This document shows positions 9,192-58,514 of a DNA stretch of 64,000 bases, one piece after another. Position numbers and translations under genes: made by a program. Position 1 is the first letter of the stretch, and each line of letters begins with the position of its first letter. The stretch is from sequence record NC_070958.1; one strand, 5' to 3'. The notes under the pieces are model-generated. The model searched no databases. It was not told the DNA's origin and was given only the letters and a program-made list of their open reading frames with translations.

Positions 9192-9284
9192 ATGGGATAC
9201 TTTATATTGCTTTTGCTTTTGATCGCTGTTCTGGTTAAACTGAGTCGGATAGAAAAGAAGTTGGGGAGAAAGAAAGATGTCTGA
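9192..9284 (+). CDS. 30-aa single-TM microprotein (not in ORF track)
   Basis: MGYFILLLLLIAVLVKLSRIEKKLGRKKDV*; SD AGGAG; first ORF after promoter; stop overlaps clpP start. Confidence 0.6.
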   Translation: MGYFILLLLLIAVLVKLSRIEKKLGRKKDV

Positions 9285-9999
9285 TCAAGAAAAACCTGTT
9301 ATCAAGATTAACTCATTTAGCTTTATGTGCGACGTCGATGACCATGCGTTGCACAAGTTCTTCGATTTCTACGACTCGATGTCTGTCAAAGACGGATTGA
9401 TAATCAATGTCTCGAGTGATGGCGGGAACCCGGAAGTGACACTGAAGATCCAAGACTTCGTGACATCCAGGAACCGTCCCACTCTGGTTGTTGCAATCGG
9501 TGATTGTTCCAGCGCTGCGATGGGATTCTTCGGGATACGAGGAACCACCAGACTCGCGTACAGCAGTTGCCGGTTCATGGAACATCAACTCTTACTGAAC
9601 ACTCCCAAGATGAGTATTGAATCCATCTGCTCGTCCATTGATGAAGTTCAGTCCAGATCCCATCTCTTTGAGCAACGTCTCACCAACTGGTGTGGGTTGA
9701 GGGAAGAGGAGTGTAAAGAACTCTTCAGTCCAAACGACCTTTACTTTGATGCAATCGATGCATTGATGTTCGGGACTCGTGGTATTATTGACGGGATCAT
9801 CATCCGTCAACTGGACGACTTCGAGTGGATCGTTCTCACCAGGGACGGGTTCAAACGTTTCATGTTCCCCAGGGATATCATCAATGAGAATCCGGTATTA
9901 ACAGAAGAGGAGTTAAAAGAATATGGGTTGAAGCCCTATAAACCCGATAACGTTATCAAAGCGATAGAACGACGTAAACATCGTCAAAGTCTCGCTTAA
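9277..9999 (+). CDS. clpP: ClpP-like serine protease
   Basis: VSSDGG (cf. INSPGG), GDCSSAA (catalytic Ser), RFMEHQ (His), NDLYFDAIDA..GIID (Asp). Confidence 0.8.
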   Translation: MSDQEKPVIKINSFSFMCDVDDHALHKFFDFYDSMSVKDGLIINVSSDGGNPEVTLKIQDFVTSRNRPTLVVAIGDCSSAAMGFFGIRGTTRLAYSSCRFMEHQLLLNTPKMSIESICSSIDEVQSRSHLFEQRLTNWCGLREEECKELFSPNDLYFDAIDALMFGTRGIIDGIIIRQLDDFEWIVLTRDGFKRFMFPRDIINENPVLTEEELKEYGLKPYKPDNVIKAIERRKHRQSLA

Positions 10000-10028: not shown

Positions 10029-11657
10029 ATGTCCATTCTGAATGATGTAACTTATACCAACCGTGCCGGCACTCGTGAAATCATCGACGAGGTTGTTAAG
10101 GAGGCATTCGATAGCGTTTGCTCCACTATGGGTCCGGATGGTAACTACGTCGTGATCAACCAATCCAACGTTCCGGTCACCACCAAGGACGGTGCTTCCG
10201 TAGCCAAGGCACTGGACTTCGGTGAAACCCGTCGGAACATGATCGCACAACTGGTTCGCGAACCGAGCCTCCGAGTAGAGCGTGAAGTCGGTGATGGTAC
10301 TACCACCACTGTCTTCATGACCACCAAGCTCTATCAGGCGTTCTGTGACAACATGACTTTCCGTGAAATCCGTTTCATCGATTCCATGGTTGGTAAAGCG
10401 CTCGAGGCGCTCCGGAAACTGATCATCCCGGTCAAAGCGAGCTCCCCCGAGTTTAAACTCATGTTGACTACCACTGCGAACTATGAGACCGAGATCGTTG
10501 AACGCATCCTGGAACTCTATCAGGGCGATGCACTCCCGAACATCACGCTTCGGAAGAATCCGAGCATTCCCGAGGATCGTGTTGAGCGTGTCACTGATCT
10601 CCGTTACAACGGTGCGTATCCGTCACCTGAAATTCAGGCTATGAGTAAAGCTCCTCGTAGTCGGATCACTTTTGGTGCCGGTACAACCGTGGTCGTGGTC
10701 GACAGTAACATCGAGACCATCCAGATGGGTGATCTGGCACGTTTGGCACAACCTGGTGGGGATCCGGTAGTTATCATCGCTACCAGCTTCTCTATGGCTG
10801 CTATCCAGGCTATCAAGGGTTACTACCAGATGGCTAACGAAGAGGCACTGAAAGCACTCCAGGCTGATAAGAGTGCCAATGTCGCATTGACTGCACCTAT
10901 TGTTCCGTTCACTGTTCAAGCAGGCGGGACTCTGGGGAAAGCAATGTTGCTGGAAATGGCACAACTGCTGGGTCTGACAACCGCGGTCGATCTGTCCAAT
11001 GGTATCACCCTCGCCAAAGAGTGTGATGCTCCTTTCGTTCTGAGTCAAGACGGTGTGACCATTCCTCGGGAATGCGAGCATGTGGAAACTCGCCGGAAAG
11101 AGATGTTGGAAATCAACACCGCCCAGTACGAAGAGCTCGATCAAGCTACTCGTCAAAAGGCACCCGGCCTGATGCTGTTCGAACGCATCGGGATTCTTTC
11201 TGGCACCAACATCACTGTCAGTGTGACTGGCCAAACAGAAAGTGACTGTTCTGAACGTTACTATCGTTATGAGGACGTCATCACCGCTGCCCGTAGTTCA
11301 CTCGGGTTCGGTGTACTTCCTGGTATCGGTTGGGGGTATCTGCAAGCAGCTAAAGAAGTCGAGGACCACTTTTACGAAGTGGGAATCACCCAGAACCAAC
11401 GTATCCTGATGGATAAGTTCCTGGATGTTCTTCGTGCCCAGTACACCTACCTCACCGGTAATGTTTACCGTGACATGGATCGTGTCTCCTTCCTGGACCT
11501 CACCACTGGTGAAGAATCCAAGGATCCTGGCAAGGTCTATGATAACGCCGCTGCAACCTGTCTCGCTCTTGAGAGTGGTTGGGGCGCTGCCAAGACCCTT
11601 GGTAAACTGAGTACCATCACTGGTCGTGGTGATACCAACTATCTCCACAAGCGTTAA
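10029..11657 (+). CDS. groEL: GroEL-like phage chaperonin
   Basis: STMGPDG, TTKDGASVA, GDGTTT, RYEDVITAARS, GVLPGIG, VYDNAAAT; 542 aa; no GGM tail. Confidence 0.92.
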   Translation: MSILNDVTYTNRAGTREIIDEVVKEAFDSVCSTMGPDGNYVVINQSNVPVTTKDGASVAKALDFGETRRNMIAQLVREPSLRVEREVGDGTTTTVFMTTKLYQAFCDNMTFREIRFIDSMVGKALEALRKLIIPVKASSPEFKLMLTTTANYETEIVERILELYQGDALPNITLRKNPSIPEDRVERVTDLRYNGAYPSPEIQAMSKAPRSRITFGAGTTVVVVDSNIETIQMGDLARLAQPGGDPVVIIATSFSMAAIQAIKGYYQMANEEALKALQADKSANVALTAPIVPFTVQAGGTLGKAMLLEMAQLLGLTTAVDLSNGITLAKECDAPFVLSQDGVTIPRECEHVETRRKEMLEINTAQYEELDQATRQKAPGLMLFERIGILSGTNITVSVTGQTESDCSERYYRYEDVITAARSSLGFGVLPGIGWGYLQAAKEVEDHFYEVGITQNQRILMDKFLDVLRAQYTYLTGNVYRDMDRVSFLDLTTGEESKDPGKVYDNAAATCLALESGWGAAKTLGKLSTITGRGDTNYLHKR

Positions 11658-20062: not shown

Positions 20063-20078
20063 GAACGTAATTAAAGTA

Positions 20079-20118
20079 ACCCTCACCTCCCTTGACGGGG
20101 AGGTGAGGGTCTTTATCT
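20079..20118. terminator. Bidirectional terminator
   Basis: ACCCTCACCTCCC-TTGACG-GGGAGGTGAGGGT between convergent genes. Confidence 0.85.
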
Positions 20119-20124
20119 TATTTG

Positions 20125-21072
20125 TTATTTTTCAGAGGGGTCAAAACCCATGAAGGCTTCTAAATCTGCGATTTCGATCATATCAATCGGCCTGAAAGCC
20201 TTTGCCACATCACCACCGGCTTCACAGAGACGGAAGATGAGTTTGTTACAGCTATCGATCGCCCGGCCCAGTTCGTTGTTCATCTTGGTCAGGAAGTTGG
20301 TCACCTTGTTGGCGTGACGTTGTTCCATTTCCGTACCAGTTGCCAGCATCTTGTTGTAGATCTCAGCGAACTTGGTGTTCTCTGCAACAGATTTGGATTG
20401 GAGGTTACGATAGGCACCGCGCAGTCCTTGAACCAACGATGCCAGGTTATAAGCTTCTGCTGTGGTTTTTACGACACCGCTGAAGTTACCATCTTTACGA
20501 CGCTCGATCATGGAATCGACTTTGTCGTAAGCCGCCTGGATTGCTTTGAACTCCGCTTCGAAGGTGGGGCACTTCTCACCGATGGTTTCGGCTGACTTGC
20601 AAACGTCATTGATCATGCCGTTCTTGTTAGTGACGTACTTGTCACTCAAACCCTTCAAGGTTGCAGGAAGAGGCTTGGCCAGCAGGATATCGAGTTCTTT
20701 GGCTTTGGTCTCGGCCTTAGCTTTGACTTCATCGGACGCCGTCTTGATTTCGCTCTCTACTGCTTTGGAGACCTTGTTGGTATCGGCCACAGCTTTGGTA
20801 ACAGCTTGATCTTGACCACGACCTTTGGAACCAAAGAAGAAGTCCTTGACCATCTTCAGAAAGTTCATTACCATTTCGTAGAACTTCTTACCAGCACCAA
20901 CGATCGCAGTACCGAGACCTTCATTCCCTGCAATGTCTTCGAGTCCATTGAGACGGAGACAGGTATGAAGGTATTCACCATCAGGACCTTCCAGTTTGCC
21001 GGTTGTGTTCAGTTCTTCAAACCCCGCCAACAGGGCGTCGGTATGGTCCGGCATACCAAAAGCAATATTCAT
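20125..21072 (-). CDS. Putative internal head (ejection) protein with propeptide (start moved to 21072)
   Basis: SD AAGGAG before MNIAFG; IAGNE/G candidate protease site; helical Ala/Lys-rich body. Confidence 0.6.
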   Translation of the reverse strand: MNIAFGMPDHTDALLAGFEELNTTGKLEGPDGEYLHTCLRLNGLEDIAGNEGLGTAIVGAGKKFYEMVMNFLKMVKDFFFGSKGRGQDQAVTKAVADTNKVSKAVESEIKTASDEVKAKAETKAKELDILLAKPLPATLKGLSDKYVTNKNGMINDVCKSAETIGEKCPTFEAEFKAIQAAYDKVDSMIERRKDGNFSGVVKTTAEAYNLASLVQGLRGAYRNLQSKSVAENTKFAEIYNKMLATGTEMEQRHANKVTNFLTKMNNELGRAIDSCNKLIFRLCEAGGDVAKAFRPIDMIEIADLEAFMGFDPSEK

Positions 21073-34074: not shown

Positions 34075-37000
34075 TTAACCTAATCCAACGGTGTTCGGTC
34101 GACCACCTTTACCTTGGCTGGCCATCAGGTCATTCAACCTACCAAGCTGACTGATGATCCCACTCAACAATTGCTGAGCTCCTTCATCACTGACTGCTTG
34201 TGTTCCCGTGCCAGTCTGTTTGGGAGCTGGTTTGGGGGCTGGACCAACACTAGAAACAGTGGTGGGACCTGCCGGTTGACTTACTGGTGCCGGAGCACTC
34301 GGTTTGGGAGCCGGAGCCTGAACTGGTGCCGGACTCGGAACTGGGTTAGTAACAGCGGCGGTTGGTGCCGCACTAGGAGATACCGGCGGAGACGCTGTCG
34401 CAGCTTTCTGTTGATTAACGCTGCTCTTATCCAAGAGCTCATCGACTTCCTGCTTATGAGTCTTCTTGGTAGATGCGACTTTCTCTTCAGCGGCCTTGGG
34501 GACATTCTGATCGGCAGCGTTAGGAACATCCGCTATCTTATCTTCACCGCCAGAGGTCGGTGCAAAGTCGGAGGTCTTTGTCGGACCCGCTGCTTTGATT
34601 TGACCGTTCTGGAGTTTAGCAAGATATTCGGTATATGCCTTACGACGTTCGTCAGTAAATGGAACAGAGTTACCACCGTTGATGCCACGAACAGCACTAT
34701 CGAAGTCACCAGTCGTCGCAATGGACTTGATCGCTTTATTACCCAGAAGGTAACGAACAGCGGAGTCTGCTACAACGTTAGGATCTTCAGATACCAGTCG
34801 TGGGTTACTTACGACGTCTATCCCTGTCTCACGCTTGTACTTTTCGTAGTTGGCTTTACCAGTGAGCTGGAACAAACCACGACCACGATACAACCAACCA
34901 TCCTCAGGCTTCTCGTTACCGAGTGTGGGACCTTTGGGCGCTCTACCATACACATACATCGCACGTTGTTCTGGTGGCATTGCTGCTACCTTTTCCGCTG
35001 TAGCCATGTCTGGTATGTTCCTGAAATACTTCTTCAGGGTTGGTGCAGACCAGTTGGTGTTTTCTACCGTGGACTTGTAGTTCCCCGTTTCAACCTTGGC
35101 AAGTGCCAGAGCGAGAGCAATCTGCTTGTTGTCTGTGATACCAGCACGGAGCAGACCTTGAAGGAGGAGTTGTTCACCCTGTTCCGGAGTCATGGAGAGA
35201 CCTTGGTCATCACCTGCCTTCAGAGTGGGATCCATTTCCCAACCTTCACTGAACCCACCACTATACTGACCACCGCTACCAGCACCTACTGTCCCTGGGG
35301 TAGTTCCCATTCCACCAGGAGGGAAGGCATTAGCAAAGCCATTGCTTGCGTAGTTGTTTCCACCGAAAGTCCCACCTTGCTTACCGGCTTGTTCCCTGCG
35401 TTTCATACGCATGGCAGTCAGTTCGGCAATACGGGCCTGTTCAGCTTGTTTCCTGGTTTCGGACCTATCTTGGAGTTGCTCACCGATTGCTTTAGAAGCG
35501 GCCTCCTCCATTACCGGGTCGCGCAGCGCTGCTTTCATTGCATCGCTGTTAAGCGACTTAATGTAAGTATCAGCCCTATCGCTGTCGGTACCGGATTGAG
35601 CACCTTCGAACGGACTCGCTTTCACGTTCCAGACAGAAGTCTCTTCACCATCAACCATTACCATGATCTCTGACAGCACTTTAGCTATTTCGGCTTTGTT
35701 GCTATTAGAGAGCTGACGCCAACCTTGTTTCGGAGATGACCCACGTTGTTTGTAAACCAGTGCGTAGTACTTCTGGAGTACAGGGAGGAAACGTGATTCG
35801 AACCAAGCCTTCCAGTTCGCCATCATCAGTTCTGTTTTGATCCTGAACATCGGCTTGAAGAGAGCCAGTACAGACTCCAGTGGGATTTCGAGTTTCCCCA
35901 GCCCATTGGAAAGAACCATGTTCTCTTCGCAATAACGTTCAAGTTTCAGAACTGCATCTACACGCCAGTTGATATTGGCATCGTTACCGTACACGGCAAG
36001 ACGAGCAAGCGTGAATGGTTCGATTTCTGTGTCTCCATCTTTGTGGAGGTCAGATATGTCGATGTCCTTAATTTCCGCTGTGACAGCGAAGGTTTTGTCG
36101 ATGTGCTCTTGTGACCTGATTAACGACTCGTTACCGAACTTATTCTGGAACCAAGCGACGACCTTATTGTCCGATACTTCCGGATTCAGGTTGGCTTGAC
36201 GTTGCTCATCATAAGTCCTCAACTTGAGACCGTCTGCCTTCTTCTCGGCTGGATAAGCTTTACGAAGTTCATTCATCAAATCAGCGACTTCGCCAGTGGT
36301 AGCAATTCTTGACATCGTCCCAGTATCTTGGTCAATCGGGACGTCGATAGTGTAAGGATTGGTCGACATGTGGCCAACGGCTTCCTGTACACGCTCTGCG
36401 ACAAGAACTACTTCATGGGTCTGACCGGCATCGTACTCTTGAAGATCGCCAAACCTTGCAGCGTTAGCCGCGGCAACGAAAGTCAAGAAGATGGGCTTGA
36501 ACCGTGCCTGGAACCAAGTGTTGATATTGTCACGTGGAACCGGAGCCGAGTTCTCAACGAACTGTCTGAAGACTTCAGCGACCGCCTCGGGTTTACTGAA
36601 ACCTGCCGACCCACTACCCACATTAACATGCGGGAGCAACATCATCTCGAGACGTTGTACACGTTCTGCTAAATCACTCCGCCATTCACGAATACCGTAC
36701 ATCGCGAAACGAAGACGTTTCTGAATGGAGTTGGCCAGCAGAGTTGTCCGGTAAGTGGTGCCGTTGTACTTGTACCCTTCCGAGTTAGCCATATGCTGTT
36801 CGGCGTCACGACGGTCTGTGAACAACTGTCCATCATCAGTCCAGTACACACCAGTGTTCTTGATACCGTCAATCCAACTCTTGGGCATTACTGCTTCAAG
36901 AACCGTGGTCCCGATACCGATCTGAGGAATCCAGTTTGCAGCATCCTCTATCTGATCAGCAGTGGTCACTGGACGTTTCTGGTTGAACATGTTCTCTTCA

Positions 37001-50454: not shown

Positions 50455-51292
50455 AATTAGTTTCGGGAATATCATCCTGGCTAACAGCGGTAAACAGGGC
50501 ATACTGAAACCCGACGCTACCGGTCGTTATCTGTTGAATGCTGGCGGGTTCAATATCGCCAATGCTAGCGGGATTAACTATCCCGCTAACCAATACATCG
50601 TCTCCCAGATGGACAAGAACTCCGACCTGATGCGTCGTGTCAGTCAGGGTTATTGCAAGATGGAAGTTGAACATCCGGAACCTTTCGTTTATGTGGAAGA
50701 GAACGGTGTTCGCTACAAGAAAGCAATGACTTCCATTCTGGAGTGGATCAACCGGCTCCGTAGCTACGATCCTGATCGTATTTGCGGGCTCATCAGTGAG
50801 ATCTCCTTCCGTCCCACAGATCCCAACGATCTGACCAAGCCGATCTACAACATGATCTACTGTGAACCCTTCGGTCCCCGTGGACCTGAGTTCAAAGAGT
50901 CGCTGAACAACCCCCGTCACAACACGGCCGTTTCCATCCGTACTCAGGTTTCTCCTTTCCGTCCTGGTGACAACAAGAAAGAAGTTGAGTACTGGGTTGG
51001 TTATGACTGGGTCGGTGAACCTGGTATGGTTCATGCCAACAAGCACATGACCGCTGGTTGTGAATCGCTGATCCTCAATCTGAACGACAACGTACAGAAG
51101 TTCAAAGTCGCTGACGTTCTGGATGCAATGGAAGAGATGTTCACCGATGCCAGCGCTAATGCTGAAGCTCTGGAGCGGGTTGGTGGTATGGAGTCTCTCA
51201 ATGCCATGCGTGAAATGCACAACCGTCTGAAACAGAATTACCGCACAGGCGAAACTGTTCGGATGGGCGCCAGCTTTGCCGATATCTTCTAA
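50447..51292 (+). CDS. Prohead maturation protease (phiKZ gp175-like)
   Basis: EVEHP (His), GPRG, NTAVSIRT (Ser), GYDWVGEPG (Asp); C-terminal AGCE/S and GGME/S candidate autocleavage sites. Confidence 0.8.
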   Translation: MSEISFGNIILANSGKQGILKPDATGRYLLNAGGFNIANASGINYPANQYIVSQMDKNSDLMRRVSQGYCKMEVEHPEPFVYVEENGVRYKKAMTSILEWINRLRSYDPDRICGLISEISFRPTDPNDLTKPIYNMIYCEPFGPRGPEFKESLNNPRHNTAVSIRTQVSPFRPGDNKKEVEYWVGYDWVGEPGMVHANKHMTAGCESLILNLNDNVQKFKVADVLDAMEEMFTDASANAEALERVGGMESLNAMREMHNRLKQNYRTGETVRMGASFADIF

Positions 51293-51302
51293 TACCTAAA
51301 TT

Positions 51303-51341
51303 GAGTAACCAGGGCTTCGGTCCTGGTTACTCTTTTCTTTT
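51303..51341 (+). terminator. Intrinsic terminator
   Basis: GAGTAACCAGGGC-TTCG-GTCCTGGTTACTC then TTTTCTTTT. Confidence 0.9.
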
Positions 51342-51395
51342 GTACTCAACTGTTATTATATTGTTAAGCAATCGTCATCAACCAAGGAAATAGAA

Positions 51396-51968
51396 ATGAA
51401 CTTTGACCACCTTCGCATTTACACGCAACTCCGCGCACTGATCCAAACTGCGTACACTATCAAGAACACCCGTACCGCTATGGTCTCCACTTGGGATGAA
51501 CTCAAGGACGCCGAAGGTAAGGAAATCATCGTGGAGCAGTACATGACCAGGGCGAAAGCTCAGTTGGTTCAGATGTACGCACGTCGTCTGATGAAGTACA
51601 TGGAAAGTATCGCCAACCTGGACGTCATCCCGATGACTACCGAAGATGTTAAAATCGGTAATTGGCGTGTGGACTCCATCATCATCCAACTCGCCAGTAA
51701 CGAGATCAAAGATCACGACCACATGTTCCAGCTGATGATGACCAACATCTATGGTGTCACGACCAAGATGTTCGATTTCATCGACTCTGGTTTCAAACTG
51801 GAGAAATTGCTGGACCTCATGTCTAAGCAATACCTCTCCAGCTTCGAAGATCTCAATGACGAGTCCTTTGAAGTAACTGAGGAATGGGCTGAAGATCTCA
51901 TCAAGGCGTTCATCAACGGTGAGCTCCAGGATCCTGGTTTCAAGTTGCTTTCTTTGACTAAGAAGTAA
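51396..51968 (+). CDS. Hypothetical helical protein
   Basis: SD AAGGA; 190 aa. Confidence 0.8.
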   Translation: MNFDHLRIYTQLRALIQTAYTIKNTRTAMVSTWDELKDAEGKEIIVEQYMTRAKAQLVQMYARRLMKYMESIANLDVIPMTTEDVKIGNWRVDSIIIQLASNEIKDHDHMFQLMMTNIYGVTTKMFDFIDSGFKLEKLLDLMSKQYLSSFEDLNDESFEVTEEWAEDLIKAFINGELQDPGFKLLSLTKK

Positions 51969-51977
51969 TAACCACTC

Positions 51978-52018
51978 TAGAACTAGGAACCCACTGGGTT
52001 CCTAGTTCTATTTTATTT
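51978..52018 (+). terminator. Intrinsic terminator
   Basis: TAGAACTAGGAACCC-ACT-GGGTTCCTAGTTCTA, 15 bp, then TTTTATTT. Confidence 0.9.
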
Positions 52019-52028
52019 GGTCTATTTA

Positions 52029-52053
52029 TTTTCGGATATACATTATTAACATG
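52029..52053 (+). promoter_or_regulatory. Early-promoter-like motif, copy 6
   Basis: TTTT CGGAT ATACATTAT TAACATG. Confidence 0.7.
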
Positions 52054-52122
52054 AGCATAGAGCATTGAACAACCGCGGACCACTTCCGGTAAAACTCTTG
52101 TCTCTTTTAAAGGAGAAACAAT

Positions 52123-53181
52123 ATGTTTAACGACTACTACGGATTTCGCACTTCCATTAATGGTGGTGTGACATTCACCATCACCCCGCTAGGGGATAGA
52201 CAGTATCTGGAATTCCATCTTCGGGATTTGGATACTGGTGAAATGAAAGTATCCAGGATGAACCTCACCGCCGAGTCCGGTGGGACACTTTGTTCACTCC
52301 TGCTTCGGATGATGACCCATATGGAAAGTGGGGGTGGAAAGAAGACCTTCAAGTGGGATGGTTCTATTCCATTGGTGTTTGTTTACGAAGTAGGTGTTGG
52401 AATACGGATCTGTGCAGATGGGAAACATTATGTGTTCCTGTCTGGTAACAAGAACTTGTTGCTGCGTGGATTGGAAACAATCGGTGAGATGACGGAAGCG
52501 TGTGTCAAGAAAGACTATGACTACGCCCAGCATATCGCCTATTGCTACAGGCTACTCCCGAACTATGTGGATCAGGTATTCGAACAACAAGAATCCCGGG
52601 TCCGGATGGTTCACAATACCAGGTTCGGTTTCGACATCTGTCACGAAGACAAGCAAGGTAGCTTCCGGCTTTCCTTTGGTGGGAAACGTCTTGATGTTAT
52701 CGATATCCACGAAATGATAGTTGCAATCATCAAGTTAACCTGTAGCGTTAACGATGGTAAAACAATCAACATCGGAAAGTACATCTTTACCAACCTCGAT
52801 ACAGAGAGCGGGGATCGTTACATTGGAATTTTCCGTAATGCGATTCACGTTTCTTGTCGTGCCAAGATGTTACTGGTGGGCACTGGAGAACTGGAAGCTA
52901 TTGTCCAATCTCTGGGTAACATCATTTTCATGGAGACGACACGTCGTGGAAGTGATAGTAAAGAACTGGCTCGTTTCACCAGAGCAGAGAGCGAAAACCT
53001 GAAGAAGAACGTACAGCGACTGTGCGAGCTTTACAGCGATCGTCACAAATGGACGGACCAAGTTTACACCTGGTTGAGAGAATGCACTACAATGAGCTTA
53101 CAAGAGCTCTCAGTGGAGTACGGTGGGGTACAGATCAATCGTAATAGACTGCTCCGTAACAAACCGCTACTCAACAAGTAA
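52123..53181 (+). CDS. Hypothetical protein with apparent repeated beta-sheet+helix units
   Basis: SD AAGGAG; 352 aa. Confidence 0.8.
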   Translation: MFNDYYGFRTSINGGVTFTITPLGDRQYLEFHLRDLDTGEMKVSRMNLTAESGGTLCSLLLRMMTHMESGGGKKTFKWDGSIPLVFVYEVGVGIRICADGKHYVFLSGNKNLLLRGLETIGEMTEACVKKDYDYAQHIAYCYRLLPNYVDQVFEQQESRVRMVHNTRFGFDICHEDKQGSFRLSFGGKRLDVIDIHEMIVAIIKLTCSVNDGKTINIGKYIFTNLDTESGDRYIGIFRNAIHVSCRAKMLLVGTGELEAIVQSLGNIIFMETTRRGSDSKELARFTRAESENLKKNVQRLCELYSDRHKWTDQVYTWLRECTTMSLQELSVEYGGVQINRNRLLRNKPLLNK

Positions 53182-53182
53182 T

Positions 53183-53264
53183 TTCCTACTCATGTAGGGA
53201 TGAGGTGGAGGAACAATTCCGTTCCTCCTTTTTCGCAGTGCTACCCCGTAAAACGGATGACTGC
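53183..53264 (+). promoter_or_regulatory. Structured leader/intergenic RNA: three hairpins including the AAUUCC-loop hairpin (copy 1)
   Basis: TTCCTAC/GTAGGGA; GGAGGAAC-AATTCC-GTTCCTCC plus T5; GCAGT..CCGT-AAA-ACGG..ACTGC. Confidence 0.5.
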
Positions 53265-53297
53265 ATTATTGCCATGGCTAAACGCCTAGGAGTAATT

Positions 53298-54281
53298 ATG
53301 AACGTTATGAAAATGATTCACGCACCGCTTGACAATCTCGGTGAGTACCACGTCGGGATGTTCCCCGAAGATCCTGAACGAGTCTACTTGATGGACTTAA
53401 ACTTCCACGAACACAATTCCATGGTGATCCATCGCTACACCAAACACGAAATGGGTGAACTCTCAAAGATATTCAAGAGTGTTCTTACCTCCATGCAATT
53501 TGCAAGGAATGCGACCATCAAGTTCGATATTGCTGAATACGGCGTATCGGTCATCAAAGGGGCGAGTATCGAGATCCGTAATCTCGAACACGTTCATCGC
53601 CCTAATCTGACAATGAGATTCTGGGGACGGGCGAGTGATAAAGACCCTAGCGGTGAACTCGATTGGTTCTCCCAGACTGAGCGTGCACTACTGGTCCTTT
53701 CTGAAATCTTCGGAGCAATGCACGAGCTTAACGAACCAGGTAAGAAAGGAAAACTCTCGACAGTGATGCGGTTGTTTAAGAAGCATTCGTCAGAACATGA
53801 ACTATCGGAAAAGCAGTTTGTCGATTTCATCGGCGCTACCAGACCGGATAGACGCGAACTGATAAACGACATCATCATGATCGGGCACTCGCTGAGCGAT
53901 GGTCCTGTTCACCATTCCGGGTTAACGTTTGCAAGTACCGCTGACCACTATCATCTTGCACTGGATAAAGGAGAGCACCTCCCTGCATTGATAAATAGTT
54001 TCAGCAAAGTAGTCCGGGGTGAAGATGCCGTGGATCACTTCACGGAATACAACGGGGAATACCCCTGGATGTCCCATAGCTTTATGGGTTATTCTGCAAA
54101 GAAAGGGATGCCCGCCTGGAGAGACCGAACTGTCGTTATGGGGTATAACACCTACATGAAGACAGGACGGTTCAGTACTTTGACGAGTGTAGATGTACTT
54201 GAGTATATTGTTCAAGTACTTATCGAGATTGAGGAACGAGTGAAACGACTAGTCGAACTCTATCCTCCTAAGACCAAGTAG
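53298..54281 (+). CDS. Hypothetical protein (start moved to ATG 53298)
   Basis: SD AGGAG before in-frame ATG 53298. Confidence 0.75.
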   Translation: MNVMKMIHAPLDNLGEYHVGMFPEDPERVYLMDLNFHEHNSMVIHRYTKHEMGELSKIFKSVLTSMQFARNATIKFDIAEYGVSVIKGASIEIRNLEHVHRPNLTMRFWGRASDKDPSGELDWFSQTERALLVLSEIFGAMHELNEPGKKGKLSTVMRLFKKHSSEHELSEKQFVDFIGATRPDRRELINDIIMIGHSLSDGPVHHSGLTFASTADHYHLALDKGEHLPALINSFSKVVRGEDAVDHFTEYNGEYPWMSHSFMGYSAKKGMPAWRDRTVVMGYNTYMKTGRFSTLTSVDVLEYIVQVLIEIEERVKRLVELYPPKTK

Positions 54282-54287
54282 TGTGGC

Positions 54288-54330
54288 AGGGTGGAGACTT
54301 CGGTCTCCACCCTATAAACCTTTATTATTT
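54288..54330 (+). terminator. Intrinsic terminator
   Basis: AGGGTGGAGAC-TTCG-GTCTCCACCCT. Confidence 0.8.
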
Positions 54331-54344
54331 CTTTGCTCTATATC

Positions 54345-54369
54345 TTTTCAAATCGATATTATTAAGGTG
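54345..54369 (+). promoter_or_regulatory. Early-promoter-like motif, copy 7
   Basis: TTTT CAAAT CGATATTAT TAAGGTG. Confidence 0.75.
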
Positions 54370-54423
54370 TATGCAAGGCCATATAAATTAACTAATCTTC
54401 AACAATGACTAGAGGAAATACCC

Positions 54424-55395
54424 ATGAATGATTTCATCGCTGCTCGTTTCGGACATAACGTTTTCATCGGCTTCGATCTGGAGACACCTGATTGCTTGGA
54501 TGTGATCAGTGCTTCCGGTGAACGCATGGAAGTGCTGGCGATCAGCCATTACCGTCAGGATGCTCGCGGAATGTTCCGTGATCGTCGTTACGCACTGGTC
54601 CGTGCTATTGAAGGGATGTTGATCCATCTCTCCGTTCTCCCCAACGAGAAACACATCAAAGCGTTTGACTTCCTGGAACTGTCCTACATTCCAGGGGAAG
54701 GCTGCATGCTTCGTTACGACCGTCAGCGTGTATACCTGATGCGTTGCCCGCGACACATCAAAGCTCAGGAATTCAATGTCCCTGGCTTGGTCGTCGTCCT
54801 GACTCGTTTGATGAACTTGATCAAGGCCAACATCGAGTACTGTGACAATGACCTGAATGAAAAGGAAGCGCGTCTCAAGTACAAAGAGAATGACTACCTG
54901 ATCAACACCCATCTTTACGAAGTGACCCGGATGGCAAGCCCTACTGGTAACTTCAATCGCAGTTATCAACGTTACTGGGCTTTGGCAGTCCGGATGTTCC
55001 AAGGTACCCAGGGAACTCCTACTGATCCGGCACAACCGTATGCTTACGCCAAGGTACGGTTCTACAGTCCGCGTGGTTTCATGATCTATCAGACTGGTGC
55101 TGGTGTTGGTTGCAAAGAACGAGATGCGAAACTGTTTGACGCTCTCGATCGTTGCCGCCTGGGTGATCATCTCCAAGTGGTGTACACTACCCAACGTGGT
55201 GCGATGACACTTTCAACTACTCCGGATTGCGAACCGGATGGTTATGGTGAAATCAATATGCACCTGGTCAGTGGTCCTGCCGGTAGTTCGTTGACCATCC
55301 CGTATGAAACAGACGCGATCGTGTTCATTAAGAACTCCATCGCTGCGGCGAGTCGTGAAGCAACTGAAGCAGTCCGTGCACTGCGTTCGGCATAA
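54424..55395 (+). CDS. Hypothetical protein
   Basis: SD GAGGA; 323 aa. Confidence 0.8.
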   Translation: MNDFIAARFGHNVFIGFDLETPDCLDVISASGERMEVLAISHYRQDARGMFRDRRYALVRAIEGMLIHLSVLPNEKHIKAFDFLELSYIPGEGCMLRYDRQRVYLMRCPRHIKAQEFNVPGLVVVLTRLMNLIKANIEYCDNDLNEKEARLKYKENDYLINTHLYEVTRMASPTGNFNRSYQRYWALAVRMFQGTQGTPTDPAQPYAYAKVRFYSPRGFMIYQTGAGVGCKERDAKLFDALDRCRLGDHLQVVYTTQRGAMTLSTTPDCEPDGYGEINMHLVSGPAGSSLTIPYETDAIVFIKNSIAAASREATEAVRALRSA

Positions 55396-55412
55396 TCTAA
55401 GAGGAAGCTAAC

Positions 55413-55751
55413 ATGTCAGTAGAAAGCATTAAGGAACGTGTTAAGAATTTCGTTAACATGTCCGGTATCGATGTGAACTTCAATGGTCGCATCATTACAC
55501 CCAAGGCCAGGTTCCGTAAAGACAGGATGAAAGCCACCCAGGAAACCGCTCGTCACTATCGTGAGATCAGGATTTCTGATGACGTACTGGACAACCTCGG
55601 AATCGAGAAAACGGATGGCAAGAACATCCCGACCATCGCCGAGTGTTTTGAGATGCTTCCTCCTCACTTCAAGCGGAAGGACAGCATCGTCAAGTACATG
55701 GAATCCCGCCGCACCGAATTTGACAACCGACTGAAGGAGTTCTTGCAATGA
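55413..55751 (+). CDS. Hypothetical basic protein
   Basis: SD GAGGA; 112 aa. Confidence 0.75.
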   Translation: MSVESIKERVKNFVNMSGIDVNFNGRIITPKARFRKDRMKATQETARHYREIRISDDVLDNLGIEKTDGKNIPTIAECFEMLPPHFKRKDSIVKYMESRRTEFDNRLKEFLQ

Positions 55752-55894
55752 CTGATGATAATCTTCCTCGGTACATCCCTTTGGACTATATAGGGAAAAT
55801 CAGGAGTCGAGTCAAAAAGCACGACGCGGCAAGACTCAAAGCGATGTACGAACGTGCACGCAATGTCGTCAAGAACAATACCCAGTCTAAATGA
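55748..55894 (+). CDS. 48-aa basic peptide (not in ORF track)
   Basis: MTDDNLPRYIPLDYIGKIRSRVKKHDAARLKAMYERARNVVKNNTQSK*; SD AAGGAG, ATGA overlap; stop lies inside a hairpin. Confidence 0.65.
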   Translation: MTDDNLPRYIPLDYIGKIRSRVKKHDAARLKAMYERARNVVKNNTQSK

Positions 55895-55970
55895 CTGGGT
55901 TATCGAGTTGCGAGTATTCAGGTGGTATTATCCTGAGCTCGCAATCATGATGGACAATTCCGTTCATCAT
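55880..55970 (+). promoter_or_regulatory. Structured leader/intergenic RNA: three hairpins including the AAUUCC-loop hairpin (copy 2)
   Basis: ACCCAGTC/GACTGGGT; TTGCGAG..TTCAGG/CCTGAG CTCGCAA; ATGATGGAC-AATTCC-GTTCATCAT. Confidence 0.55.
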
Positions 55971-55989
55971 AATCTAAGAGGAAAGTAAG

Positions 55990-56904
55990 ATGTCCTGTAA
56001 ACTGCTGAGTATTAATGTTCACCCGACCTTGTCCATGGTTATCACTGAGGATAAAAGTTCTCATTTGCGTTTCCTTGGTCACACCAGTGAAAAGATGGCG
56101 CTGACAACCACACCCATCAAGTTGGCTGGGGAGTTGATCGAAATCACTGATTTGTGGCGGGCGAGTGAATCAACATCCGGGATCGCGACCACACGCTTTA
56201 AGGTGATCAAGTCCTGCCTGGTCTATTACCCATTTGGCGGTAACGCAATAACGCTGATGAAAGCCGAGAACCGCGAAGAAGGTATTCGGAAATTGGAACG
56301 GCTCATCCAAATATTCAAGCAATTCACCGACTACATTGCTGACGTTATTGACTTCGAAACAGCGACTAAACAGTTGCGTGAATTAGAAGATAAAACGATG
56401 GATGGATTGGTCTTCATCTATGGTGGTAAAACTTCGCAAGGTGGTAAACGTTTCTTCGAGAAGACCGAGTTCTTGGTCGGACGGTTGGTTGTAAGAACCA
56501 CTTCTTTGGTTACCACTGAACTGGGTGAACGTAAAGAAGTTCCCGTTGGACTCCAACTGGTTTTCACTGGGACAACAGGTAGCGCTATATTTGCTGTCCT
56601 GGACAACCCTATCAACAATGACAAGTACGAGGCGATCATGAGGATGACCAAACCTCATCCCGATTGCGTTCCTCGTATTTTTCATACTGCTGGATCTACT
56701 GCACACGTTAGTAGTGGACACGGTCAGAATTTACCTGACGGATTCCCCGTCGGGATTACGTTCACCTATGTATCACCGGTGACCGCTAGACAACTCACTC
56801 TCTATCGGGATGCCGATGGAATGGTCGAGTTCTTCGAGAAGACCTATCATGATGCAATGCTTCACGGTCATCTCAACCCTATCAACAACGAAAGTAAGGA
56901 GTAA
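55990..56904 (+). CDS. Hypothetical protein
   Basis: SD GAGGA; 304 aa. Confidence 0.8.
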   Translation: MSCKLLSINVHPTLSMVITEDKSSHLRFLGHTSEKMALTTTPIKLAGELIEITDLWRASESTSGIATTRFKVIKSCLVYYPFGGNAITLMKAENREEGIRKLERLIQIFKQFTDYIADVIDFETATKQLRELEDKTMDGLVFIYGGKTSQGGKRFFEKTEFLVGRLVVRTTSLVTTELGERKEVPVGLQLVFTGTTGSAIFAVLDNPINNDKYEAIMRMTKPHPDCVPRIFHTAGSTAHVSSGHGQNLPDGFPVGITFTYVSPVTARQLTLYRDADGMVEFFEKTYHDAMLHGHLNPINNESKE

Positions 56905-56907
56905 ATA

Positions 56908-57273
56908 ATGGGCGGTGTAAACCCTCTGTTCGCAGCACTGTTGGAACTGATCGGCATCGATGTCTATGACACCGACAACTATCAAATCGGTCGCACTCGT
57001 TCCGGTAACTTCACCGACAACGGTAACAAGATCGAGTACGCAATCCGGACCATTCGTCTGGGTGGTTCACTCTGGGTCACCGGCACCCTGGGTAGTGACG
57101 TAGTTGAACTGCGTGTCGTAGAACCTGGCGTAGCTGCGTTCAGTATCGGTCTTCCCAACAAGAACGATGCTGAGACTACCAGCAAGATCGAGTTCAACAT
57201 CTCCTTCACCTGCGAAGAAGATCTCCGTACCGCCTGGCGTCGTGTTGAAGGTCTCTTCAGCTACGCCGGTTAA
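56908..57273 (+). CDS. Hypothetical beta-rich protein
   Basis: SD AAGGAG; 121 aa. Confidence 0.8.
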   Translation: MGGVNPLFAALLELIGIDVYDTDNYQIGRTRSGNFTDNGNKIEYAIRTIRLGGSLWVTGTLGSDVVELRVVEPGVAAFSIGLPNKNDAETTSKIEFNISFTCEEDLRTAWRRVEGLFSYAG

Positions 57274-57280
57274 ATCGTCA

Positions 57281-57303
57281 AGGAGGGAAATAAATTCCCT
57301 CCT
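57281..57303 (+). terminator. Hairpin, probable terminator
   Basis: AGGAGGGAA-ATAAA-TTCCCTCCT. Confidence 0.6.
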
Positions 57304-57308
57304 ATAAT

Positions 57309-57333
57309 CTTTCACACCTATATTACTTAGGTG
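57309..57333 (+). promoter_or_regulatory. Early-promoter-like motif, copy 8
   Basis: CTTT CACAC CTATATTAC TTAGGTG; contains the exact phiKZ core TATATTAC. Confidence 0.8.
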
Positions 57334-57417
57334 CTGGTACGAATAGTAAAGCTTTACGCTTCGTGCTATAACTTGTTAACCAATTGTTTCATTCCATAAC
57401 TAAGGGAAATCTGAAAA

Positions 57418-57864
57418 ATGTCCAAGAAAACTGAACTGACCTTCGCTGAAATCATGTCCGCCGGTAAAGACTCCCTGGTGAAGGGTGCTGACATCCACAA
57501 CGCGACCCACACCATCAAGTTCAAGGCCGAAGACCTGACCATGCCCAAGGGCGTGACCGCTGAGTCTCTGGACCTCCACATGAACTTCATCAATCAGTCT
57601 TCCGAGCAAGTCAGCGCCGCTGTCATGGACATCGCCCAGGACCGCTACGAAGACACCAAGCACCTGGCTTGGGATGGTGTTCTGGAAGTGACCCCCGGTC
57701 TGACCCTGACCGGCTTCGCCAACCTCCGTGAAGAAGTCGACGGCGAAGCTGTCTTCGGTTCCATGTCCAGCCTGGTCGACTACAACTACGGCACCGAGCT
57801 GACCGACTGGATCACCAGCAACCAAGAGCTGATGGCCGAGAAAGCCAAGAAGCTCTTCGAGTAA
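57418..57864 (+). CDS. Hypothetical protein, probably highly expressed and monocistronic
   Basis: Extreme C-ending codon bias; own promoter and terminator. Confidence 0.85.
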   Translation: MSKKTELTFAEIMSAGKDSLVKGADIHNATHTIKFKAEDLTMPKGVTAESLDLHMNFINQSSEQVSAAVMDIAQDRYEDTKHLAWDGVLEVTPGLTLTGFANLREEVDGEAVFGSMSSLVDYNYGTELTDWITSNQELMAEKAKKLFE

Positions 57865-57875
57865 ATGTTCGATCG

Positions 57876-57920
57876 CCCGTTCCTGGAAACAGGAACGGGT
57901 TACTTCATCTCTTTTTATTT
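57876..57920 (+). terminator. Intrinsic terminator
   Basis: CCCGTTCCTG-GAAA-CAGGAACGGG then T-rich tract. Confidence 0.8.
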
Positions 57921-58514
57921 TTGGGTTTTTGTATGAACGATCGTCCCAATGCTAAACAAGTTCTTGCGAGGCACACATCTAGAACGTTCCTTTGTGATGG
58001 TGATCGTTTAAGTTGTGTGTCCTTTATTCATCACGTAACCAAACACGTCTGGATAAAGGGTGGTGATAGTTCGACTTATTTCCATGACGCCACCAACTTG
58101 AAACTTTTCCTGGGTGGAAAGATCATCAAGCTTCATAGCTGTGATCTGGGTAGTGTTCACTACGGCCTGGTTGATTTCGTTCGTAAACTGGACGTGATTA
58201 TAAAAGCTGTCAGTAACACACTCGACTTCCTTGGCAAGAATCCCAAGTACGGTGACCGTTTCGTAGTGAAGGAATTCCTTAACCCGGTGGATGGTAACTT
58301 GGTGGACATCTATACCAGTTCCATAGCTATTACATTTAGCTCCACTCACGGGTTGACGTTTGAACTCGCGTCATGTGACTTTAAGAGCCGTATCACCCTA
58401 CAACGCAAATCCGGTCCCAAGTTCCTGAGGAAGTTTCTTGATTTCGTCACCAAATGCCGAAATGAAGTTCAGAGTACTCTGGACAAGCACACTGGTACAT
58501 TACAGGAGAGTTAA
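57921..58514 (+). CDS. Hypothetical protein (start uncertain: TTG 57921 or ATG 57933)
   Basis: 197-aa ORF; no clear SD. Confidence 0.65.
   Translation: MGFCMNDRPNAKQVLARHTSRTFLCDGDRLSCVSFIHHVTKHVWIKGGDSSTYFHDATNLKLFLGGKIIKLHSCDLGSVHYGLVDFVRKLDVIIKAVSNTLDFLGKNPKYGDRFVVKEFLNPVDGNLVDIYTSSIAITFSSTHGLTFELASCDFKSRITLQRKSGPKFLRKFLDFVTKCRNEVQSTLDKHTGTLQES

Follow-up and report, generated by a model that had tools for sequence, protein, structure and literature searches.

We found two hairpins with an identical AAUUCC loop in Aeromonas phage D6, a phiKZ-like jumbo phage of the genus Ludhianavirus (record NC_070958.1; whole genome 259,831 bp). The hairpins are real and probably related by origin, and a chance origin of their common tip is unlikely. 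Both would lie in promoter-less spacers of two adjacent early operons. The reading that we prefer, with a confidence somewhat below even, is that they are structural hairpins between cistrons and form a family of two, in which copy 1 would be an attenuator and copy 2 a local structure or a relic, while the common tip would be due to common origin. The window mentioned below is the whole stretch of the D6 record that was analysed (64,000 nucleotides), and coordinates refer to it unless stated otherwise.

The two hairpins and their genomic setting

The hairpins, their spacers and the surrounding genes and transcription signals are arranged as follows.

52013..52062, + strand: early-type promoter heading the putative D6_0242-D6_0243 operon (hexamer at 52041, matrix score 36.6)
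53182..53297, + strand: D6_0242/D6_0243 intercistronic spacer, 116 nt, with four predicted hairpins; the Shine-Dalgarno sequence (SD) of D6_0243, GGAG, is paired in the last one
53207..53228, + strand: AATTCC hairpin copy 1, GGAGGAAC-AATTCC-GTTCCTCC, with an 8-bp GC-rich stem and the hexaloop AAUUCC
53229..53233, + strand: U-run abutting copy 1, T5 in D6 and LAh10, T6 in D3 and T4 in D9
53298..54281, + strand: D6_0243 with its start corrected, 327 aa, found in Ludhianavirus only
54289..54312, + strand: strong 10-bp UUCG hairpin closing the putative D6_0242-D6_0243 operon
54329..54378, + strand: early-type promoter heading the putative D6_0244 to D6_0248 operon (hexamer at 54357, score 50.8, the best in the genome)
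55895..55989, + strand: D6_0246/D6_0247 intercistronic spacer, 95 nt, with a long hairpin and the AATTCC hairpin within a closing helix; the SD is free
55947..55970, + strand: AATTCC hairpin copy 2, ATGATGGAC-AATTCC-GTTCATCAT, with a 9-bp stem including one G-U pair and the same hexaloop
55990..56904, + strand: D6_0247, 304 aa, found in Ludhianavirus only
57281..57303, + strand: hairpin closing the putative D6_0244 to D6_0248 operon; the next promoter hexamer is at 57321

Reading the sequence confirmed both hairpins where the first-pass annotation had placed them (53207-53228, followed by T5, and 55947-55970), together with their shared exact 12-mer, ACAATTCCGTTC, at 53213 and 55954. The spacers begin at or just after the upstream stop codon, as had been described. 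They had been given as 100-115 nt long with three hairpins each; the lengths are in fact 116 nt and 95 nt, and about three or four hairpins are found per spacer. Both spacers fold much better than shuffled sequences, with -42.1 kcal/mol (z = -4.5) for 53182..53297 and -30.2 kcal/mol (z = -3.4) for 55895..55989. An early-promoter matrix run over the whole D6 genome detected 32 strong early-type sites, all on the + strand. Neither an early promoter nor TATGT is found in the first spacer (matrix score -18.3) or in the second (-28.4), and two candidate spacer promoters, CATTAT at 53264 and TATTAT at 55926, were rejected with early-promoter matrix scores of -18 and -28. Since neither spacer has an early-type promoter, both hairpins appear to be located inside operons (0242|0243 and 0246|0247) whose boundaries are inferred from the promoter matrix. 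The supposed gene leaders, having no recognisable promoter, would thus be intercistronic regions within early operons.

The annotated start of D6_0243, GTG 53205, would read through copy 1. This start is almost certainly misannotated and the true start is ATG 53298, because the T-run, being 4, 5 or 6 long among the relatives, shifts the reading frame. The four flanking proteins (300-350 aa) show no mutual similarity in BLASTP and hhalign comparisons and no Pfam or PHROG match. Each copy had been said to precede a member of a repeat-protein family that might regulate its own synthesis, an idea that finds no support in downstream proteins with no detectable relationship. The ESM Atlas gave no usable match for either downstream protein; the ESM Atlas model has a pLDDT of 0.31.

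Exactly two AATTCC hairpins per genome were found by covariance-model and pattern searches in D6 and in each of the Ludhianavirus phages compared with it (D3, D9 and LAh10, 97-99% identical to D6). Within the 64-kb window, the 12-mer ACAATTCCGTTC is confined to 53213 and 55954, and the 259,831-bp genome has it at no other site. The covariance model retrieved no third AATTCC hairpin from the D6 genome, where the best other match (E = 0.03) has a different loop, and none from five phages of the next-nearest genera, where matches had E values of at least 0.13. No Rfam family matches either hairpin in a search of 51000-58000. The sole Rfam match in that region is a sub-threshold, unrelated sRNA on the opposite strand (51285-51356). 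More distant relatives, sought with both downstream proteins by tblastn among GenBank phages, were not found outside the four Ludhianavirus genomes, and IMG/VR, JGI metagenomes and a 5.8-billion-protein word search likewise gave none. A literature search found no Ludhianavirus transcriptome paper. What had been proposed as a recurrent RNA family is thus confined, in the genomes searched, to two copies in each of four closely related phages, just as the accompanying caveat of two copies only had warned.

Structure and probable common origin of the two copies

Copy 1 looks like a terminator or an attenuator in shape. Its stem of 8 pairs, five of them G-C, and its 6-nt loop are terminator-like in a generic terminator scan, and its local fold of -15.5 kcal/mol has z = -3.9 against shuffled sequence. 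It is located 26 nt past the D6_0242 stop and 70 nt before the start codon, and a second D6 hairpin, at record position 34776, has a similar tail. The hairpin is unchanged across D6, D3, D9 and LAh10, and the length of the U-run is the sole variation in the whole spacer among these genomes. With its GC-rich 8-bp stem and run of 4-6 U, copy 1 would most likely act as a partial terminator of the intrinsic type, or attenuator, and reduce transcription into D6_0243; the earlier caveat that the U-tail may let it double as a terminator holds. Efficient termination at this position would, however, leave D6_0243 without a visible promoter, a point against the structural reading.

RNA sequencing in phiKZ and 201phi2-1 has mapped terminators with shared sequence motifs and conditional terminators inside transcription units (PMC10914365, PMC11512511), and the phiKZ-type motif is BCCYCCCC-loop-GGGRRGG-YTTAT (PMC10914365). 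In its GC-rich stem, short loop, immediate U-run and position within a transcription unit, copy 1 resembles intrinsic terminators and these conditional terminators, and by this analogy partial read-through would tune the distal gene. The resemblance has limits: copy 2 has no U-run, and both copies lack the TTAT motif. Many strong D6 hairpins do match the phiKZ-type motif, with a C-rich 5' arm, a G-rich 3' arm and TTAT. Neither AATTCC hairpin has it, which also argues against the structural reading; copy 1 has a G-rich 5' arm, a C-rich 3' arm and a T5 tail, and copy 2 is AT-rich with a tail rich in purines.

Copy 2 has 9 pairs, only three of which are G-C, and folds with -10.2 kcal/mol (z = -4.2 against shuffled sequence). 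There is no U-run within 2 nt of the stem, the tail being AATCTAAGAGG. The hairpin lies 53 nt past the upstream stop, and its stem ends 19 nt before ATG 55990. In LAh10, the spacer carries four substitutions and is no better conserved than its surroundings, and the 5' arm of the hairpin is changed from GA to CG with no compensation (-6.5 kcal/mol, z = -0.9). Copy 2 therefore tolerates uncompensated weakening, in favour of the structural reading. It would most likely be a local mRNA structure only, such as a decay barrier or a processing boundary, or else a decaying relic. A 13-codon upstream ORF over copy 2 (55947-55987) was dismissed as a reason for the conservation. This ORF lacks an SD, the frame in which the shared 12-mer is read differs between the copies, and two amino acids are changed in LAh10.

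The outer stems had been described as completely different, whereas an ungapped alignment of the two stem-loops matches at 17 of 22 positions. Among the 8 aligned pairs, four are invariant, two are altered on one side and two are compensatory (G-C to U-A). The invariant and the compensatory pairs are consistent with a maintained stem, the latter being the reason to suppose that it is maintained, although covariation as high as that observed was reached by 46 of 500 shuffles and only 3 distinct sequences are available. The two spacers are alike only over about 15 nt, with flank alignments at p = 0.41 and 0.73; the local alignment of spacer 1 with spacer 2 has p = 0.0015 for one pair, among hundreds of possible pairs. 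Near-identical hairpin copies are frequent among the D6 intergenic regions, and 26 pairs of intergenic hairpins have common tips with differing lower stems (for example, CCC-AAT-GGG with 4/11 matches in the lower stem and ACC-GAAA-GGT with 0/10). In a genome where intergenic hairpins come in such tip-sharing families, common origin would explain the identical tip with no dedicated riboswitch-like mechanism. The loop itself is the main difficulty for the structural reading. A neutral loop should have diverged like the flanks, yet all six positions are identical between the copies, which fits a sequence-specific recognition site. To our knowledge, AAUUCC is not among the known extra-stable loops, so the identity of the loop is not explained by selection for stability.

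Alternative readings of the shared tip

A rather unlikely alternative is that the tip, GRAC-AAUUCC-GUUC, is a sequence-specific site for a candidate trans factor, which could be a complementary RNA or an RNA-binding protein of phage or host. This factor would govern the distal genes of both adjacent early operons together, acting as an antiterminator at copy 1, repressing translation at copy 2 or directing cleavage. The pattern of conservation argues for it: the loop and its closing pairs are identical, whereas the lower stem seems to covary and the flanks show no relationship, and neither the loop nor the 3' arm varies among the four genomes, even though LAh10 has a changed 5' arm. Both copies are in a promoter-less spacer that precedes an orphan gene (~300 aa) of an early operon, and the estimated chance that two independent hexaloop hairpins would have identical tips is about 5e-4. 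However, there are only two copies, the only genomes available for comparison are 97-99% identical, and tip sharing is common among ordinary D6 hairpins. The change in LAh10 weakens copy 2. The two sites also differ in the distance from the stop (26 versus 53 nt), in the distance to the start (70 versus 19 nt) and in the U-run (present versus absent), so that one mechanism cannot act alike at both. Moreover, no candidate binding protein was found, the flanking proteins having no recognisable domains or homologues. We consider it unlikely that the tip is bound by a putative RNA-binding regulator coupling the distal orphan genes of the two neighbouring early operons; this regulator, a phage-encoded or early-acting host protein, might work as an antiterminator at copy 1, and its role at copy 2 might be that of a translational or stability operator.

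That two unrelated functional hairpins have 12 bases in common by accident is quite improbable. Twelve bases represent the shortest repeat class, of which about 8 chance repeats are expected among the D6 intergenic regions, and the finding was picked post hoc from a 64-kb read. A 12-mer shared by two spacers, the chance case raised in the first-pass annotation, is not significant on its own, but chance is an unlikely source of two 12-mers that lie exactly on the loops of separate 8-9 bp stems. The number of pairs with the same 12-mer capping independent stems of this length is expected to be about 5e-4 by an estimate from the 16 intergenic hexaloop hairpins, rising to about 2e-3 when hairpin pairs of every kind are counted.

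We regard as very improbable that the shared 12 bases act as DNA, either as an asymmetric protein-binding site or as a recombination repeat bracketing the 2.7-kb D6_0243 to D6_0246 segment. The copies are direct repeats on the same strand, 2,741 bp apart, and local copying of short intergenic modules is shown by a 16-nt ribosome-site repeat within the same operon. In T4-type phages, repeated regulatory stem-loops recombine and shuffle modules (PMC2839356). On the other hand, the two copies sit in complete stems that pair independently and show compensatory changes, a sign that selection acts on RNA or single-strand structure. The segment is also retained in all four genomes, and a dimeric operator should conserve its half-sites rather than the spacer between them. 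Four other candidates, an integron attC-like site, a symmetric DNA operator, 16S rRNA complementarity and tRNA T-arm mimicry, were set aside, as their defining patterns do not match.

The main model of the first-pass annotation, in which the loop pairs with the downstream SD and the resulting pseudoknot hides the ribosome-binding site, is barely credible. AUUCC can indeed pair with GGAGU (53289-53293) and UUCC with GGAA (55980-55983), and the 9-nt linker of copy 2 would be geometrically feasible for an H-type knot. However, the complementarity is unspecific: a matching GGRR occurs within 20 nt of the start in 129 of 265 D6 genes, so that about half of them could form such a pairing, and the expectation for both sites matching is about 0.24. 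The duplexes of 4-5 bp have only -4.3 kcal/mol (copy 1) and -3.0 kcal/mol (copy 2), and the usual pseudoknot penalties exceed such energies of -3 to -4 kcal/mol. The linker from stem to SD is 9 nt at copy 2 versus 60 nt with two intervening hairpins at copy 1, where the SD is already paired within a separate local hairpin in the predicted fold. No covariation for the loop-SD pairing is available among the sequences at hand.

Known RNA elements and biological meaning

The AATTCC hairpins share features with several known elements. Like the boxB sites of lambda nutL and nutR that bind N, the coat-protein operators and the T4 gp43 operator, they have few copies, a conserved loop with conserved closing pairs, a lower stem that may be free to covary and a site in early transcripts. 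Unlike these, the D6 hairpins have no boxA-like companion, differ from each other in their position relative to the ribosome site and terminator, and comprise two sequences only. Hairpins between cistrons can also stabilise or process mRNA, as do the REP stem-loops in malEFG and the RNase III sites between T7 early genes. The D6 hairpins likewise lie in structured spacers of early operons and could set differential stability or processing, although their stems (8-9 bp) are too short for RNase III sites. PeSL cassettes of T4-type phages are another case of repeated intergenic stem-loops in orphan-rich early regions, possibly spread by recombination (PMC2839356). In these cassettes, an early promoter is joined to the stem-loop and many copies exist (PMC2839356), whereas the AATTCC hairpins have no adjoining promoter and only two copies. 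The terminator-promoter junctions found elsewhere in the D6 genome are a better analogue of PeSL.

Little is known about regulation past the promoter classes in phiKZ-like phages, in which antitermination is suspected (PMC11512511). If a specific factor does read the AAUUCC loop, this would be a rare case of sequence-specific post-initiation control in these phages, and a regulator of this kind would amount to a boxB-like system in a jumbo phage that forms a nucleus and transcribes with multisubunit RNA polymerases of its own. If instead the preferred structural reading is true, the value of the finding would lie mainly in annotation, including a corrected gene start. D6_0242-0243 and D6_0244-0248 would then probably be operons with structured internal spacers, and the analysis would provide a first map of promoters and terminators for a group of Aeromonas jumbo phages that is so far unstudied.

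The AATTCC hairpins and their distribution

Aeromonas phage D6 of the genus Ludhianavirus (MN131137.2, 259,831 bp) matches the region 52000-57000 at 100% identity, and its relatives D3, D9 and LAh10 match it at 97.3-98.7%; a record position minus 186,000 gives the window position. The D6 record has split RNA polymerase β/β′ genes, a phiKZ-like gene for an internal head protein and a tubulin-like gene, and the subunit of its virion RNA polymerase shares 70-75% identity with counterparts in other Aeromonas jumbo phages and Pseudomonas phage OBP. Judging from these genes, D6 is a phiKZ-like jumbo phage. Genome-wide counts were made on the full D6 record, assembled from its annotated stretches. 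Both hairpins are located where the first-pass annotation had placed them.

53207-53228, + strand: copy 1, GGAGGAAC-AATTCC-GTTCCTCC, followed by TTTTT
55947-55970, + strand: copy 2, ATGATGGAC-AATTCC-GTTCATCAT, with one G-U pair, followed by AATCTAAGAGG

Compared with shuffled sequences, the local folds are strong (copy 1, -15.5 kcal/mol, z = -3.9; copy 2, -10.2 kcal/mol, z = -4.2), as is the folding of the whole spacers (z = -4.5 for spacer 1, between D6_0242 and D6_0243; z = -3.4 for spacer 2, between D6_0246 and D6_0247). The shared 12-mer ACAATTCCGTTC has two occurrences in the window and no others in the whole D6 genome. The outer stems had been described as completely different. They do include two compensatory changes (G-C to U-A) among the eight stem pairs compared, but four pairs are invariant, two are changed on one side, and 17/22 bases are identical in an ungapped alignment.

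A 13-codon ORF (ATGATG...TAA, 55947-55987) overlaps copy 2, its stop codon ending 2 nt ahead of the D6_0247 ATG. This ORF lacks an SD and differs by two amino acids in LAh10, so it is probably not translated. In addition, a 16-nt exact repeat, CATAATCTAAGAGGAA, at 55391-55406 and 55968-55983 makes up the ribosome-binding regions of two genes of one operon, D6_0245 and D6_0247; as far as the ATG, these regions are 22/25 identical. The outermost pairs of copy 2 come from the first three bases of this repeat.

D6 contains no other intergenic AATTCC-loop hairpin, even when one loop mismatch and stems down to five pairs are allowed, and D3, D9 and LAh10 likewise have two copies each and no more, at these same positions. 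A covariance model trained on the three distinct hairpin sequences recovered only the training copies across D6; the next match, a tetraloop hairpin at the end of the genome, is unrelated (E = 0.03). In pAEv1810, AerS_266, PS1, CF8 and OBP the best match has E = 0.13, and the matches carry different loops. The hairpins have no match in Rfam. Covariance and pattern searches together, along the lines suggested in the first-pass annotation, give two copies in each of the four Ludhianavirus genomes and none in these five phages of the next-nearest genera. Homologues of D6_0243 and D6_0247 beyond Ludhianavirus were absent from GenBank phages, IMG/VR, JGI metagenomes and a large protein collection.

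Several other features were seen in these genomes. A 9-bp hairpin at record 94257-94280, beyond the window, has the loop AATCCC, one base away from AATTCC. It starts ~13 nt past an early-type promoter hexamer (record 94239-94244) and is situated directly 5′ of the D6_0102 AGGAGG; the resemblance may be due to chance, because neither its stem nor its closing pair is related to those of copies 1 and 2. Two divergent ORFs, also beyond the window (record 9226-9408, - strand, and 10926-11633, + strand), begin with the same 25 residues, implying an inverted DNA repeat at about record 9.2-11 kb. Phage D3 has an isolated 88-bp fragment (record 9438-9525, minus strand) with 99% identity to 53541-53628 in the D6_0243 coding region, far away from the D6_0243-type gene itself.

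Transcription units and variation among relatives

By k-mer enrichment and an iterated weight matrix, we found 32 sites of a ~35-nt promoter-like consensus, approximately tCTATAnnTTTTCAgAnAGATATTATyannGTGTA, in the whole D6 record. All are on the + strand, with scores (28-51 bits) well apart from all other sequence. Ten hexamers lie in the window and the remaining 22 elsewhere in the record.

Promoter-like hexamers in the window (+ strand, weight matrix)
329
9159
12640
14219
29585
52041
54357
57321
60266
62539

These sites are usually just 3′ of a terminator hairpin, and a strong hairpin precedes each of the region's three (52041, 54357 and 57321). They are probably early promoters used by the virion RNA polymerase; the described phiKZ early promoters are similar in number and AT-rich character (PMC10914365). 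The hexamers in spacer 1 (CATTAT) and spacer 2 (TATTAT) score -18 and -28 in the matrix and were rejected as promoters. A TATGT motif, which shows threefold enrichment in the upstream regions of D6 genes and frequently adjoins terminator hairpins, is absent from both spacers. We infer one unit consisting of a promoter, D6_0242, spacer 1, D6_0243 and a terminator, and a second consisting of a promoter, D6_0244, D6_0245, D6_0246, spacer 2, D6_0247, D6_0248 and a terminator. As these units place both spacers between promoter and terminator, the hairpins appear to be intercistronic, rather than in gene leaders as first proposed.

With its T5 tail, copy 1 has the shape of a generic intrinsic terminator, which bears out the earlier caveat that it may double as one. 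Many strong D6 hairpins resemble the terminator motif of phiKZ (a C-rich arm, a G-rich arm and TTAT; PMC10914365), which fits neither copy. These strong intergenic hairpins have 11-17 bp, mainly tetraloops and YTTAT(G)-type tails, like the motif mapped in phiKZ. They form families that are near-identical over as much as 60 nt; several are bidirectional and lie between convergent genes. One example is the following.

20068-20127: strong hairpin of a near-identical family, with a twin at record 126080-126139, beyond the window

Among D6, D3, D9 and LAh10, spacer 1 (53182-53297) differs only in the length of its T-run (4, 5 or 6 T). The annotated D6_0243 frame from GTG 53205 crosses copy 1 and the U-run, and the length change puts this start out of frame. 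Judged by this frame shift among relatives, 53205-53297 is non-coding and the true start is likely ATG 53298, preceded by GGAG; the D9 annotation uses the ATG. Spacer 2 (55895-55989) has four substitutions in LAh10. Two of these (GA to CG) alter copy 2 in its 5′ arm, turning an A-U pair into G-U and a G-U pair into a C/U mismatch, while the loop and 3′ arm are as in D6. The fold falls to -6.5 kcal/mol (z = -0.9), so the compared sequences give no visible sign of extra constraint on the stem strength of copy 2.

Origin and possible roles of the two copies

Our preferred reading, held tentatively, is a terminator-type attenuator and a structural hairpin or relic of shared origin. Copy 1 would act as the attenuator between D6_0242 and D6_0243. 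Copy 2 would be a plain structural hairpin just 5′ of the D6_0247 ribosome site, either a decay or processing boundary or a relic, and both would descend from a common origin. Conditional terminators within transcription units and motif-sharing terminators are documented in phiKZ and 201phi2-1 (PMC10914365, PMC11512511).

The main rival, recognition of the AAUUCC loop itself by a factor, seems rather unlikely. The loop is fully conserved while the flanks retain no similarity, and AAUUCC is not known to be extra-stable, which would favour a factor; however, there are only two copies, their contexts differ, and LAh10 tolerates a weakened copy 2.

That two hairpins share 12 bases by accident is improbable. 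The D6 spacers contain 81 repeat diagonals of at least 12 bases, compared with 7.8 in shuffles, and the excess is accounted for by promoters, terminator families, T-runs and ribosome sites. The 12-mer belongs to the shortest repeat class and, taken alone, is unremarkable, as the first-pass annotation had cautioned. This caution does not extend to a 12-mer capping an independent stem at both sites, for which we estimate ~5e-4 chance pairs (16 intergenic hexaloop hairpins, nine independent positions). Common origin or common constraint of the two tips is therefore more likely than coincidence. The spacers align over 15 nt only (14/15 matching, p = 0.0015 for the single pair), and their flanks show no relationship (p = 0.41 and 0.73). 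An identical tip on a diverged lower stem is widespread in ordinary D6 hairpins, with 26 such pairs (for example, CCC-AAT-GGG, lower stem 4/11 matches, and ACC-GAAA-GGT, 0/10), and D6 terminators have near-identical copies as long as 60 nt.

DNA-level roles of the shared 12 bases are very unlikely. Least probable is the proposed SD-sequestering pseudoknot, ruled out as the leading model by weak loop-SD duplexes (-4.3 kcal/mol for copy 1, -3.0 for copy 2), a GGRR within 20 nt of the start in 129/265 D6 genes, unequal stem-to-SD spacing (60 versus 9 nt) and a spacer 1 SD that is predicted to be already paired within its own local hairpin.

Autoregulation by a repeat-protein family downstream of both copies lacks its premise, because D6_0242, D6_0243, D6_0244 and D6_0247 show no mutual similarity by BLASTP, all-against-all proteome BLASTP or hhalign (probability ≤1%); none has a Pfam or PHROG match. 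The earlier observation is real yet overstated, and for the most part its specific regulatory reading lacks support. The two hairpins are best regarded as a minor intercistronic pair belonging to a known general type.
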